Assembly (NCBI GenBank): GCA_002189035.1
Contig: NEEC01000008.1
Location: 2,542,001-2,606,000 of the forward strand
DNA length: 64,000 nucleotides
Source: Utricularia gibba
Taxonomy: Eukaryota > Plantae > Magnoliophyta
Direction: 5' to 3'
Part shown: positions 17,043 through 51,416 of the stretch, in pieces
Numbering within the stretch: the stretch's first letter is position 1
Layout of the letters: the number at the start of each line of letters is the position of its first letter
Position numbers and translations under genes: made by a program
The notes under the pieces: generated by a model
The model's database searches: none
What the model was told of the DNA's origin: nothing
Seen by the model: the letters and a program-made list of their open reading frames with translations, nothing else

Positions 17043-18466
17043 ATGATGGTGGTCCTCAAAACAAGGGAGACCCTTGTGAAGTTTCATCTACTCATCGCCT
17101 TCTTCATTCTTCTTTGCACGGTTGGTGTTTACATAGCCGACGATTTCAACTGCTGTAATGCTGCTGTCCGTACTCCCGTGGAAAATAGCCGGGACGATGA
17201 GGCGGCTCCAGGGTGCGATTTGTTCTCTGGGAGATGGGTTTACAGCGACGAGTTCCGTCCTCTTTACGAGGAGAGGGAGTGCTCTTTCATGGAGGCCAGT
17301 TTTGCCTGTGAAACGTACGGGAGGAAGGACATGAAGTATAAGCATTGGAGATGGCAACCCGATTCGTGTGATCTTCCGAGGTCTCTGTAACTGTGTTACG
17401 AAGTCTCTGCTGCAATGAAGTAATTCTGAGTTCCTATTCTTGTGTTCATAATCAGCAGGTTCGATGGCGGCGCACTTGTGGACAAACTAAGAGGGAAGAA
17501 GCTTGTTTTCGTTGGCGATTCACTGAACAGAAATCAATGGGTCTCCCTGCTCTGCATGATCGAGTCCTCTCTTCCCATCACATCGGAAAAGAAGACACAT
17601 TCAAAGGGGAACCTGTTATCCTACCACAACAGTGTAAACGAACCCAGCTTTTTTCTTGTTACCATCAGCATCGTTGAAGCTTGTTGTTGATTTTCCCGAT
17701 TGAATGAAGGAATACAACCTGACGATCGGCATGTACTGGTCGCCGTTCCTTGTCGAATCCAACTGCGACGACGTGCTGAAGCATCGTGTTTCTGGGCGGG
17801 TGGTGAGGATTGAGTCCATTCAAAAGCATGCGAGGCATTGGATTGACGCCGATTTTCTCATCTTTGACACCTACACCTGGTGGCTGAATCCCACTCTCAC
17901 ACTCATGTAACACGACAAACTCCTCTGCTAATCTCCACCGTGTCATTTATCATCTGCATTGTGCTGATGTTGGCTCAGTATCCTTCAGATGGGGTTCATT
18001 CGAAAGCGAAGAAGCGACATACCGAACCGTGGCGATGAAGCGGCGGCGCTACGAGATGGCGCTGATGACTTGGTCGAACTGGGTGGAGATGAACGTCAAC
18101 ACGACGAAAACCAAGCTCTTTTTCATGAGTGCTTCACCTTATACCTATAAAGGGGATGCAGTGAGACACTGCGACAACAAAAGCGAGCCTATTTTTTCTG
18201 AGAGCAATTGGAGTAACCAGAGCATGATGGCCACAGCAGAGTCAGTGATACATCAGCTGAACCAGAGGGGAGTGAAAGTCGAGTTTCTGAGGATAACCGA
18301 GATGTCTGACCAAAGGGTGGATGCGCACCCGTCCATTTTTAGGTACTTTTACACTCCGGTTGATCGGAATGATCCGAAATCGTATTCCGACTGCCTCCAT
18401 TGGTGCCTCCCAGGAGTCCCAGATGTTTGGAACCAAATCCTGTATGCATACATTATGAACGCATGA
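17043..18466 (+). CDS. TBL: Trichome birefringence-like O-acetyltransferase, copy 1. Exons 17043-17380, 17459-17633, 17710-17906, 17989-18466
   Basis: N-terminal TM anchor, [20 protein letters not shown] (GDS), [17 protein letters not shown] and [12 protein letters not shown] (DxxH). These motifs resemble the TBL3/ESK1/TBL34 xylan-acetylating group. Confidence 0.92.
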
Positions 18467-18959
18467 TCATCAGTACCACTTCAAATTTCATTTTCTTTTG
18501 TGTTGAGAGAGAGCCTATAAACGCTTGATTCAAAAGAGAAGACAATCATATGAGTTCTATTCCGTATTACTGTAACATTCACCGGCAAGCTTATACACCT
18601 GAAGGAACGATAATGGAAAAAACCAAGGTATAAGAAGATTGCGATAACATCCTTCTCGGTTGTAGTTTATGAAATACATGATTTTGAGTAACTTTCTTTC
18701 AGACACCATGGAATGAAGATGTTTTCCTAGCAAACCCCTGACATCAGGTAACACGTTTCATTTCATGATGGTTCACACTCAGACACCATGGAATGTTTTG
18801 TTCGAATCTGGTAATGTAATAACACCTTGGATGGATGATTCACTCAGAGATACGTTATGGGAAAGAATTCGGACTAGTTGGCTAGAAACAATGAAAAAGG
18901 TAAGAAATACACGAGTTTATTATATCAATGACGCCAGAATCAGTATCCCAAAACCCATA

Positions 18960-20663
18960 ATGAGATACAGAGAATCGAAAACGGCGTCTGCTCACCTGTT
19001 AGTCCTTCTGATGTTCCTCGTTCTCATTTCCGTTTTGTTTGTAATACGAAGCAGAAGCAGCAATGGATACAACATTTTCCAAGAAGAAAATTTGGTGAAA
19101 AAGGATGAGAAACGGTGCGATTTCTTTTCTGGGAGATGGGTTTTCGATGATGTTTTATACCCTGTTTACAAGGAGAACAAGTGTTCTTTCCTGGAGTTCG
19201 ACACTTCGTTTTCTTGTCAAAGAAACGGGAGGAGGGACTTGAAGTATCAGTCTTGGAAATGGCAGCCCTTCGATTGCGATCTTCCAAGGTCCCCTTCTTT
19301 CATGTAGTCTTGGCCAAACCCAGTAGTTTTGAATCTAAACCAGTCGTACGTAATGTTCTGGTTAGAAAACATAACGGGTGTCTTCTGTAAACCCCAACTT
19401 CGAAATGCAGGTTCAATGGGACTCTGTTGCTGGAGAAACTCAAGGGGAAAAAGCTGGTTTTTGTTGGGGATTCCTTAAACAGAAACCAATGGATGTCGAT
19501 GCTCTGTCTGACTGAATCTTATCTCCCACCATCATCCAACAAGATCATCACCACAACAAAAAGCCTCTTCACCTTCCATTCCAAGGTAATCAATTTTCTG
19601 TTCTTTTTTCTTCTCCACTGGTGTGACTGAAGCTTATCATCTCGCAATGTGTTGGAAGCCGTGTTGATGATTAGGGCAGTAACGCGATCATGATTCTGTA
19701 GAACTAGTAACAATTTGGTTAAAATGAATTGCGGTTAGCTTTCTGATGATTGATTCATTGAATCGCTTTTCCATGATTGATCACTTGGAACCGGAAATGT
19801 TGAAGGAATACAACGCGACACTCGGGTTCTACTGGTCGCCGCTGCTTGTAGAATCGAACTCCGATGACCCAGAAGATCACCGTGTGAAAGATCGCGTGAT
19901 CCGAATAAACTCGATCTACAACCATGCTCGAAATTGGGGTGATGCGGATATACTCATCTTTGATTCATTTGCTTGGTGGTTAGAACCAACCATGACAATC
20001 TTGTAAGTCTCACTCACTCGCACTGCTCTGTGTGGTATTTTTTCTCAATCCTGCTGCTGCAATGCAGATGGGGCTCATTTGAAGATCCCCCAGCGGAGGC
20101 GATAAAAGTGCGCGTGGGGATGAAGCGCCGCCGCTACGAAATGGCGCTGAATACTTGGTCTGAATGGCTTGAAATCAACATTAACACATCACGAACCAGA
20201 CTCTTCTTCATAGGCTTCTCCCCCTTCCATTTTTAGTTCCGTACACCATGCCTGTTCCTCCTTGGCCTCTTCAACAATGGTATAGCAGTAATAACACAGT
20301 TTGTTGCATCTGCATCGCAGTGGGGAGAGTCTGGGGGATCGCAGGAACTGCTACAACGAGACGGAGCCCATAACGAAGAGGGATTACTGGGGAATTGCAA
20401 CAGATGTTGAGATGATGAAGACTTTGGAAATTCTTCTCAAGAAACTGGAGAAGCGAGGGATTCAAGTTACATACTTGAACATCTCACAGCTGTCTGATTA
20501 TCGAATAGATGGGCATCCTTCGGTTTACAGAAAAACTCGACCCAACATGCAGCAGCTTGCGGATCCAATCCCCTTCTCAGACTGCGCCCATTGGTGTCTC
20601 CCCGGAGTTCCCGATGCCTGGAACCAGATTCTGTATCACTATATCGTTGATCACAGTCATTAG
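18960..20663 (+). CDS. TBL: Trichome birefringence-like O-acetyltransferase, copy 2. Exons 18960-19288, 19411-19585, 19806-20002, 20068-20235, 20321-20663
   Basis: TM anchor, [51 protein letters not shown] and [12 protein letters not shown]. Confidence 0.92.
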
Positions 20664-21646
20664 AATGTCCATGTCTTTTTTCTAGATTCAATTATTGGAA
20701 AATCAGATGCTTACAAAGGCTCTGCCTTGAATTCTAGTTCTTCTGAAACTCTTTCCTTGGATCCTTTCCGGCGGGTCGGGTGGCGGGGTGGAGTTTAGAT
20801 GCAGCTTGGGATCATGGCTGGAATCGCAATAATTCCCACTATTTCTCTCAAACTAAGGCTGCCCTGCCCATGGTTTAGTTCGGCATTCAAAACATGGAAG
20901 CCCCGCCTCCGTCTGGTATCAAAAACGACAAATCTGGTGAAGCATCGGTGTTGGCGAAAGTGGTGTGGAATGCAACAGCTTAGTGGTCTTGTTCTCCAGC
21001 TTTAAGCGACTGAGTGAATTGGATTTTATGAACACATGTTCTCCAGCTATTCGCCTCCCTCCGATCTCGTTCCTGAAACGCAGACGAATAAAGGAGTGTC
21101 AGGCCTGTCAACGGTGCAATTCCCAACGCCTCCTTCGATTCAGTGAAATGGCGGGCCTCCTCCTCCACTCTTCTTCCTCATGTGACCAAGGAAATATCTG
21201 CGACCCCACAAAAATCTGAAACACTGTTGGATCTATAGCTCATTTATGGAGGAATGATGAATATACACTTTAAGAAGGATAGCCTAATTCAGAACATCAA
21301 GGAACAGTATCTTAAGGCAAATTCCACCGCCATCTCAGATCCCAGAATTCAAGATCTTCCAAGGTCATCTGAGAAAACATCATATAGATCTCTTGACTAC
21401 TTTCTTCACCTTGATTTGAATCAGAGTTTTCCTTTAAAGGTTCTGGGTTGAAGAGGGCCTACAGTTCTGATGCATAAAATGACAAGAGCTAGGATCTTCC
21501 AATGGCTGTAAAAGTGAAGAATGAATGAATGCCTTTCGATGGTAGCAGAGCCGAAGAAATAAAACTCATTGAATCGTGCTGCACTTTCTGGTGATATTCA
21601 TTAAATTCCATGAGGAAGCCCTTCCTCCTCCTCCCTCTTCTCCTTG

Positions 21647-21654
21647 TATAAATA
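21647..21654 (+). promoter_or_regulatory. TATA box of the MIR390 locus
   Basis: TATAAATA after a CT-rich tract, ~32 nt before the base of the hairpin. Confidence 0.65.
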
Positions 21655-21685
21655 CGCCTCTTCATCCCACTTCCTTCCCTGTCTG

Positions 21686-21785
21686 AGTATGGAGAAACCG
21701 TGAAGCTCAAGAGGGATAGCGCCAAGTGGGGGCTATGAATCCATGCAGCGCTATCCATCTTGAGTTTCATGGATTTCTTCCTTAC
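21686..21785 (+). ncRNA. MIR390: MIR390 precursor hairpin, variant. Mature 21703-21723, star 21749-21769
   Basis: Mature AAGCTCAAGAGGGATAGCGCC matches canonical miR390 (AAGCUCAGGAGGGAUAGCGCC) at 20/21. Star CGCTATCCATCTTGAGTTTCA matches miR390* at 20/21. The duplex has 2-nt 3' offsets, and the lower stem AGTATGGAGAAACCGTG pairs with CATGGATTTCTTCCTTACT. Confidence 0.93.
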
Positions 21786-22726
21786 TTAAAAACCAGAGCA
21801 ATGCCACGCTTCTCAACTGGCTCCCACCGGAGTCCTCCCCTTCGTTCTCTTCCATTTGTTTTATGAACATATTTGCAGGCTGTTGCGCGGCAGTGGCATT
21901 TGCATGCTCTGAGTGTCTTTCTTTGCCTCAAGACGGAAAGGCATACAAAAGGAAAGCCAGAAGACGAAAAGGTTGCACAGGGAGGAGGAGCTTGCGGTCT
22001 GCGGAGGGTGAATCCCTTCGCGACAAGGGCCGAAGTCTCGTCCTTGTCTGAACGTCTCTGCCAATGGATATTACAAAAATTTTCATCAATTTTCTGGAAA
22101 AAAAACATCAGAATGTTGTTGATGTCTCCAAACAAAGAAACATAGGGAGTATTAATGGAGATCATCTTATTTTGCGAATTTACGGATTAAATATTTGTTT
22201 GGAATAATTTATATTTTTTAAAAATATTAATAATCTATTCTATTATCAAATAAAATTTAAAAAACGTGAATCTAAAAGTAATAAAACGTAGAAATATTTT
22301 TCGAAAATCATTTTTTGAAAATTAAAATCAAAGAAAGTTTACCCTTTTTTTATTTTCATTAAATCATTGTGAAATTTAGATTGAATTATATTTTAAAAAG
22401 CGTTATGGGAACATGATAAAAAATAACAAAAAAAAATATGAAAATAGTTCAAAATTCGATTAGAAAATGTAAAAAACTTGGCTACACAAAATGTAACAAA
22501 AAATGATTATTTTATTTTATTTTTTAAATATTGAAACTAATTTAAAACACCTAATCTTTTTAAAAAACAATAAAAAGAAAGAAAGAAAGCGCAGACAAGG
22601 CGTTTTTGCTTGTAAAAAAACAGTTGAAATTCGATAGAGCTGTGAAATTCCTCGGAATTAGGGTTTATTAAGGCGTCCAAATCGATTCTGGTGTATGCCC
22701 AAATTGCTTCAAAGATCCACGGAACT

Positions 22727-49764: not shown

Positions 49765-51416
49765 ATGTGGGTTCAGACACCAAGCCTCCTCCTCTTCACC
49801 CCATCATTGCTAAACTCGCTTCCACTCTCATGCTTCCTGTTGGTTGTGGCGGTTTTCGCCTTCTGGGTCTCTCCCGGTGGGCTTGCATGGGCACTTGCAC
49901 ACACCGCAAAGGCCAGTAAGAGTAGTGATAGTGTTAGTATTGGGATTCCGGGGCCCTTTGGCTTCCCTCTCCTGGGCTCGGCGCTTATTTTCGTCACCTC
50001 CACCCCATATCGGATCCTGTCGGAGGCTTCTAGAAGGCTGAAAGCTACTCGTTTGATGGCCTTCTCGGTCGGGTTTACTCGAATGGTCATTTCGAGTCAC
50101 CCGGCTACTGCAAAGGAGATTCTCGGTAGCTCTGCTTTCGCTGACAGGCCGGTGAAGGAGTCTGCTTATGGACTGCTGTTCGATAGAGCCATGGGTTTCG
50201 CTCCGTATGGGGAGTACTGGCGAAATTTGAGGAGGATCGCAGCTACTCATCTGTTTAGCCCGAAAAGAGTTGCTGGTTTTGGGGATTTCAGGAGAGAAAT
50301 CGGAGAGAAAATGGCTGAGGAAATAACGTTGAAAATGGAGAAAAACTGCAGGGTTCAGCCGAGGGAAGTGCTCCACTATGGGTCTTTGAACAATGTGATG
50401 ATGTGTGTATTTGGGAAAAACTATGATTTCGGTGATGAACATGGAGATGCAGTTGAGTTGGAGGAGATGGTGAGAGAAGGGTATCAACTGCTAGGAATTT
50501 TCAACTGGAGCGATCACTTTCCCTTTCTGGGGTGGCTTGATTTGCAGGGAGTGAGAAAAAGGAGCAAACTTTTGGTTCAAAAAGTTAATCGCTTTGTTGG
50601 GAAGATCATAATGGAGCATAGAAACAGAAGAGTTAACCAGAAAGAGCAGCATTCTCATGATTTTGTTGATGTTTTGCTTGATTTGGAGGACGAACACTTG
50701 CTTTCTGACTCTGATCTCATTGCTGTCCTTTGGGTAACTTTAACTTCAAAAGTAGTAATCTTAGTCATCTCTTTTTCTTACCCTAAACAAGTGTCTTTTT
50801 TCTCCATGATCAGGAAATGATTTTCAGAGGGACAGATACAGTAGCCATTCTATTAGAATGGATCTTAGCAAGAATGGTGCTTCATCCTGAACTCCAAGCC
50901 AAGGCTCAAGAGGAAATCGACAGGGTCACTGGGAAGAATAGACCAGTGAACGATTCCGACTTGCCAAATCTCCACTACCTCCAAGCCATAGTGAAGGAAA
51001 CTCTTAGAGTCCACCCTCCTGGTCCTCTCCTTTCATGGGCTCGTCTTGCTGTCCACAACACTCACGTCGACGGTCGCTTCGTCCCGGCTGGGACAACCGC
51101 CATGGTTAACATGTGGGCCATCACACACGACCCAGAGGTGTGGCCGGAGCCCGAAAAGTTTCAGCCTGAGAGATTCTTGCATCAAGATGTGGCCATCATG
51201 GGGTCTGATCTAAGGCTTGCACCATTCGGCTCGGGGCGAAGAGTGTGCCCTGGTAAGGCCATGGGGCTTGCGACGGTTCAGCTGTGGCTCGCTCAGCTGC
51301 TTCAGAGGTTCGAGTGGTTAGCCACAGATGAATGTGGAGTGGACTTGAGTGAATCGTTAAAGCTCTCCATGGAGATGAAGCAGCCTCTCATTTGCAAAGC
51401 AATTCCCAGGACTTGA
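49765..51416 (+). CDS. CYP78A: Cytochrome P450 CYP78A (KLUH/CYP78A5-like). Exons 49765-50733, 50814-51416
   Basis: [69 protein letters not shown] and heme motif [10 protein letters not shown]. Confidence 0.95.

Follow-up and report, generated by a model that had tools for sequence, protein, structure and literature searches.

Few plant miRNAs are as invariant as miR390. The seed that is used by AGO7 for binding to TAS3 is closed by position 8 of the miR390 guide. In a 64-kb stretch of the Utricularia gibba genome (hereafter the window, to which all coordinates refer) a hairpin is found that carries a miR390-like guide with A instead of G at this position. The locus raises the question whether it is a genuine MIR390 gene and, if so, whether its changed guide still acts in the AGO7-TAS3 pathway, has acquired targets of its own or is drifting beside another copy. 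The best explanation of the data described below is that the locus is a working MIR390 paralogue in a compact Lamiales genome.

The Window Contains a MIR390 Hairpin With a Compensated Substitution

The sequence AAGCTCAAGAGGGATAGCGCC at 21703-21723 (plus strand) is the only one in the 64-kb window with three or fewer mismatches to canonical miR390, where 0 are expected. A previous reading of this DNA, made from the letters alone (the sequence-only reading), had described a MIR390 variant here and proposed folding of the region. Folding of 21680-21795 gave a hairpin at 21684-21788 on the plus strand (Table 1) with a minimum free energy (MFE) of -60.2 kcal/mol and a z-score of -9.1, and 0 of 200 shuffled sequences were equally stable. 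The pair table of the MFE structure agrees with the details of that reading: A8 of the guide is paired with U12 of the star (A21710-T21760), which preserves the duplex, and the 5' A, the G11/A mismatch and the 2-nt 3' overhangs at both ends are all present. The G11/A mismatch is the sole unpaired position of the guide/star duplex, which lies within the stem-loop limits of at most four mismatches and a bulge of at most 1 nt in the duplex.

TABLE 1. Features of the MIR390 variant locus (positions in the window).
Feature	Position	Strand	Basis
TATAAATA box, putative pri-miRNA promoter	21647..21654	+	about 30-37 nt 5' of the hairpin base; read from sequence, role inferred
5' arm, lower stem	21684..21702	+	paired in MFE structure; GAGTATGGAGAAACCGTG resembles lower stem of Rfam consensus and of 31 natural MIR390 hairpins
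Guide, miR390 variant AAGCUCAAGAGGGAUAGCGCC, 5' A, 21 nt	21703..21723	+	one mismatch to canonical miR390
Guide position 8 = A (canonical G)	21710	+	paired with T21760; independent DNA run X2 agrees
Guide G11, unpaired opposite A21757, conserved G/A mismatch	21713	+	pair table
Terminal stem-loop region, 25 nt from guide to star	21724..21748	+	MFE fold
Star CGCTATCCATCTTGAGTTTCA / CGCUAUCCAUCUUGAGUUUCA	21749..21769	+	position 12 alone differs from commonest natural star
Star position 12 = U (canonical C), compensating change	21760	+	paired with A21710; DNA run X2 agrees
3' arm, lower stem	21770..21788	+	paired in MFE structure; TGGATTTCTTCCTTACT resembles conserved TGGnTTCTTCTTACT of natural hairpins

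Membership of MIR390 was defined by Xia et al. as a guide on the 5' arm with at most two mismatches to miR390; in the hairpin described here the guide is on the 5' arm and has one mismatch. In a permissive scan with the Rfam model of MIR390 (RF00689) the hairpin was aligned over the full length of the model (1-121) with 72.7 bits (E 2e-16), and guide position 8 and star position 12 were displayed as a compatible pair. At the gathering threshold the same model gave no match in the window, because the score of the hairpin lies slightly below the curated cut-off of 77. This deficit goes together with a short loop insert (18 nt versus 46 nt in the model), which in turn is due to the short spacing between guide and star. 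The lower-stem sequence agrees on both arms with the Rfam consensus and with 31 natural hairpins. With canonical MIR390 (RF00689; Arabidopsis MIR390a and MIR390b) the locus therefore shares a 21-nt guide on the 5' arm that starts with A, a duplex with the G11/A mismatch and 2-nt overhangs, and the conserved lower stem; it departs from it in guide G8A, star C12U, the 25-nt spacing from guide to star and an Rfam score below the cut-off. The hairpin is a genuine MIR390, and its G8A/C12*U pair, in which the asterisk denotes the star, is compensated. A MIR390 on the minus strand was also considered and rejected: it scored 58.6 bits in Rfam versus 72.7, its fold was weaker (-48.6 kcal/mol), and the published 21-mer (see below) is the plus-strand guide with a 5' A.

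Both Substitutions Are Present in Independent DNA Data

The sequence-only reading would have failed if the two substitutions were assembly errors. In DNA run X2, which stems from another study and another year, a single contig of 8185 nt with a depth of 41.6 spans 21500-22000 and matches the whole hairpin, by which errors at G8A and C12*U are excluded. The sole difference to the window in these 501 bases lies beyond the hairpin, at 21656 (G>A). In run X1, 98% of the words sampled from 21400-22400 are present.

Two further observations concern the region upstream of the hairpin. The G>A difference in X2 sits 2 bases 3' of the TATAAATA box, the putative MIR390 promoter. Run X8 differs from the window at 21501-21618 exclusively by C>T (13 differences listed), a bisulfite-like pattern that is uninformative for the hairpin; as the differences are of this type only, cytosines just 5' of the putative MIR390 promoter appear unmethylated in the X8 sample.

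The Variant Is Rare Among Plant MIR390 Genes

The pattern AAGCTCANGAGGGATAGCGCC was searched in metagenome contigs with plant DNA, which gave 73 matches in 68 contigs. Guide position 8 is G in all of them, and the exact A8 variant had zero matches in this plant DNA. Star position 12 is C in 54 of the 54 matches with a recognisable star, among which are 31 distinct full hairpins. Natural variation of the star falls elsewhere, for instance at star position 8, where either C or T faces guide G12, and at the 3' end. The spacing between guide and star ranges from 28 to 134 nt in the 54 natural hairpins, which makes the 25 nt of the variant the shortest of those compared. Xia et al. identified 374 MIR390 genes from 163 species and described guide and star as 'extremely conserved'. 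In the literature searched, the canonical string was found in 123 papers and the variant string in the main text of none. The possibility that the variant is common in other plants, which would have removed its novelty, thus found no match in either source, and the A8 variant is rare among plants.

The same search retrieved two repeats of the canonical guide. On one metagenome contig (L012:3088-3612, minus strand) the canonical miR390 guide occurs in four exact copies, accompanied by degenerate ones, which form a tandem repeat with spacings of 72 and 216 nt; neither a star arm nor a hairpin was found near this array, which looks like a satellite-like array derived from the 5' arm of MIR390. 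On another contig (L026:2240-2915, plus strand) the exact guide occurs three times, about 327 nt apart, and the first unit folds as a hairpin with the star ...CGCTATCCATTCTGTGCTT, suggestive of MIR390 hairpins clustered in tandem.

The Genomic Neighborhood Points to a Compact Lamiales Genome

Two tandem trichome-birefringence-like genes (TBL, PF13839) are located directly 5' of the hairpin on the plus strand (17043-18466 and 18765-20663), and the second ends about 1 kb before the hairpin. Gene density in the window is approximately 1 gene per 3 kb. A two-exon CYP78A5/KLUH-like P450 gene is present at 49765-51416 (plus strand). The closest sequences to the CYP78A exon are from Paulownia, Sesamum and Rehmannia (Lamiales), with 67-69% identity, and the LEA_2 protein encoded in the window is closest to a Lamiaceae protein (53%). 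A query for the orthologous locus in relatives, made with the final exon of the neighboring TBL gene, retrieved nothing above 57% identity, and in Phlomoides no miR390 was found within 10 kb of the locus of the LEA_2 neighbor. An open reading frame at 663-1151 on the minus strand was recognised by eye as what we take to be the N-terminal exon of an AGO1/AGO10-type Argonaute.

The Variant Is Expressed Beside a Canonical MIR390 Locus

Table S2 of PMC8333044 (Cervantes-Perez et al. 2021) lists U. gibba miRNAs called by ShortStack, and contains AAGCUCAAGAGGGAUAGCGCC as a 21-nt miRNA at unitig_749:2563622-2563769 on the plus strand. The locus in the window was tied to unitig_749 by the identical rare 21-mer, the Lamiales affinity and the gene density, and not by matched coordinates; provided that the two are the same locus, the ShortStack list identifies the exact variant 21-mer as a precise 21-nt guide. 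The search of small-RNA data for the exact 21-mer, as proposed in the sequence-only reading, was thereby answered positively from a published table. Whether the variant had already been catalogued was also asked there; Table S2 of PMC8333044 does contain it, but without comment. The authors of PMC8333044 placed it, by a search at 90% identity, among loci 'already annotated in miRBase', and the change at position 8 was left unremarked. The locus has thus been published already, and the novelty lies in recognising that it encodes a seed variant, with compensation in the star, of a miRNA that does not vary otherwise.

The search for other MIR390 loci was likewise productive, as the same publication reports a canonical G8 locus in U. 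gibba. This locus [AAGCUCAGGAGGGAUAGCGCC, unitig_0:1071117-1071283, Cluster_110] has 1425 reads, 1154 of which are the major RNA, with a Dicer call of 21 and MIRNA 'Y' (PMC8333044). It is like the variant in being a ShortStack-called 21-nt miRNA, probably of the same genome, with 20 of 21 guide bases identical, and unlike it in having G at position 8 and in that no precursor alignable to the variant at 80% likeness was found in the DNA run. The variant locus is thus an expressed second MIR390 copy beside the canonical one. Table S2 of PMC8333044 also lists a 23-nt sequence [UUCGCAGGAGAGACGGCACGCCG, unitig_746:126348-126537] which looks like a divergent form of miR391, itself related to miR390. 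If this miR391-like 23-mer is counted, the miR390 family in U. gibba would number at least three expressed loci.

Since a canonical and well-expressed G8 copy coexists, the TAS3 pathway does not depend on the variant copy, and relaxed constraint is a live alternative to a functional role. According to this alternative, which we regard as possible although it is not the reading that we prefer, the variant is a redundant copy that is transcribed and diced, its guide change is neutral or slightly harmful, it has no function of its own, and the star change arose by a G:U route, a template switch or gene conversion between the arms. The coexisting canonical locus argues for it, as does the fact that the primary transcript was seen in none of the RNA runs checked, two of which gave no coverage of the hairpin region; the ShortStack miRNA call that the variant locus passed argues against it.

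The Double Change Could Have Arisen Without a Disrupted Stem

In the sequence-only reading the double compensatory change was taken as a sign of selection on a functional miRNA. Hairpin energies calculated after swapping the bases at positions 8 and 12* were -62.6 kcal/mol for G:C, -59.9 kcal/mol for G:U, -60.2 kcal/mol for A:U and -56.0 kcal/mol for A/C. If the star changed first (C12* to U), giving G:U, and the guide followed (G8 to A), the stem was always paired and the guide change therefore needed no rescue. From the sequence, both substitutions can be read as C-to-T type transitions that share a CTG/CAG context, each on its own strand, and one template switch from arm to arm could likewise have produced the two at once. 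With a structurally neutral G:U intermediate and a possible template switch, the double change by itself does not demonstrate selection; the nearly free intermediate and the shared CTG context of the two transitions on their respective strands would fit a redundant copy under relaxed constraint.

The remainder of the hairpin points in the other direction. Outside the 8/12* pair the guide is identical to canonical miR390 and the star is identical to its commonest natural form. The lower stem is preserved as well, as is the G11/A mismatch, whereas the loop resembles none of those compared. Such exact conservation despite a fully diverged loop would be a better argument for constraint than the double change, and speaks against mere drift. 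In the whole-genome DNA run, from which some contigs had been filtered out by the tool, no second contig with a likeness of 80% or more to the variant hairpin was found; because none reached this value, the MIR390 duplication is probably not recent, although the point is weak.

Processing and AGO7 Loading of the Variant Are Expected to Be Retained

The conserved lower stem of MIR390 has been linked to base-to-loop processing by DCL1 (Xia et al.), and MIR390 precursors engineered with compensatory changes give functional modified guides that silence matching sensors (PMC4756824). As the variant has this lower stem, and as the engineered precursors are functional, normal processing of the variant hairpin is expected, with which the published miRNA call agrees. 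Its transcript would be cut base-to-loop by DCL1. The C to U change in the star keeps the pairing and thus the stem intact, so that processing should be unaffected.

The 5' A and the duplex's central region determine loading into AGO7, according to the portion of PMC5902766 that summarises Endo 2013. Judged from the predicted duplex, both known determinants appear to be retained in the variant, and as the 5' A and the central G11/A mismatch are kept, the variant guide probably continues to be loaded into AGO7. Position 8 lies next to the central region checked by AGO7, and loading could be affected.

The Substitution Narrows the Range of Target Sites

Pairing at seed positions 2-8 is critical for binding of the AGO7-RISC to TAS3, and the 5' site is needed for recruitment of RDR6 (PMC8346886). 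Pairing energies were computed for the core site that pairs with guide positions 2-17, with either C or U opposite position 8 (C-type and U-type sites). On the standard C-type core site the canonical G8 guide has -31.6 kcal/mol and the A8 guide -25.0 kcal/mol with an internal mismatch, a loss of 6.6 kcal/mol for the variant. The mismatch of A8 with the canonical TAS3 site that the sequence-only reading had predicted is thus borne out by calculation as an A/C mismatch. On the U-type core site the A8 guide has -29.2 kcal/mol and the G8 guide -28.9 kcal/mol. The same reading had proposed a co-evolved U-type site as belonging to the variant, but such a site is not private, as the canonical guide pairs with it by G:U; either guide would be able to use any such site. 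As G pairs with both C and U and A with U alone, the variant narrows, and does not shift, the range of targets. At standard TAS3 sites the A/C mismatch at the last seed position would lead to poorer binding and cutting by the variant, whereas TAS3 sites with U opposite position 8 would be fully paired by the variant and also recognized by the canonical guide. The loss on standard sites is compatible with relaxed constraint as well.

No site complementary to the variant guide was found in the 64-kb window besides the star of the hairpin itself, and neither a tasiARF-like sequence nor a TAS3 miR390 site was found there. A Utricularia TAS3 has a bulge in the seed region at the 3' miR390 site (Xia, Xu and Meyers), and U. 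gibba has been reported with two AGO7 copies and no AGO2/3. These two features, together with the invariance elsewhere of G8 (73/73) and C12* (54/54), argue for a retargeted or co-evolved trigger. In this reading A8 would fit certain TAS3 sites (those with U across from position 8, or the bulged 3' sites that have been remodelled) or else a new target outside TAS3, and would form a second, partly separate channel, possibly with one of the AGO7 copies. We consider this unlikely, as no target was seen, no site in the window besides the own star is complementary, and a U-type site would be shared with the canonical guide.

Comparison With Other Changed MIR390 Guides

Guides derived from MIR390 and altered in sequence exist in other systems. 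Work of Xia and colleagues from 2013 is said to have described miR391 and the miR390-derived superfamilies miR4376/miR7122 as MIR390 descendants with a changed guide and other targets. The variant is like these families in that the guide is changed from MIR390. Unlike the variant, which has one changed base and is still 21 nt long, they have diverged from miR390 in many places of the guide and frequently have another length or register. With one substitution, a length of 21 nt and no new target in the 64-kb window searched, the variant does not qualify as such a retargeted descendant. Engineered MIR390 precursors (PMC4756824; amiRNA vectors, PMC4464980) are similar in that guide and opposite arm are altered and the fold is kept, and their modified guides are functional in silencing assays; they are laboratory constructs, whereas the variant is a natural allele that is fixed in the genome.

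A Second miR390 Guide in U. gibba

On balance we lean towards the view that the variant has kept a function in the AGO7-TAS3 pathway, as a partly redundant duplicate that is weaker or biased towards certain sites, and has not been retargeted. Together with canonical miR390 from the second locus, it probably continues to act on the TAS3 family. A more specific proposal, which we hold to be quite doubtful, is that U. gibba runs two miR390 guides, with A8 as the co-evolved trigger of a remodelled subset of TAS3 (sites with U facing position 8, or bulged 3' sites in which pairing takes a new register around position 8), maybe with one of the two AGO7 copies. An assembly or sequencing artefact, or a read-level isomiR from the canonical locus, can be dismissed as the independent run X2 refutes it by showing no difference inside the hairpin at a depth of 41.6, 98% of the sampled words are contained in run X1, and the variant 21-mer is reported at a genomic locus separate from the canonical one.

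If the copy is merely drifting, it represents ordinary relaxed constraint after duplication. If U. gibba does run two guides, the most conserved plant miRNA-tasiRNA module would be naturally split into two channels. A fixed and expressed seed variant that coexists with a canonical copy, in a lineage with bulged TAS3 3' sites and a duplicated AGO7, constitutes a natural test of the need for seed pairing, and the same setting also tests whether duplicated miRNA genes split their targets.
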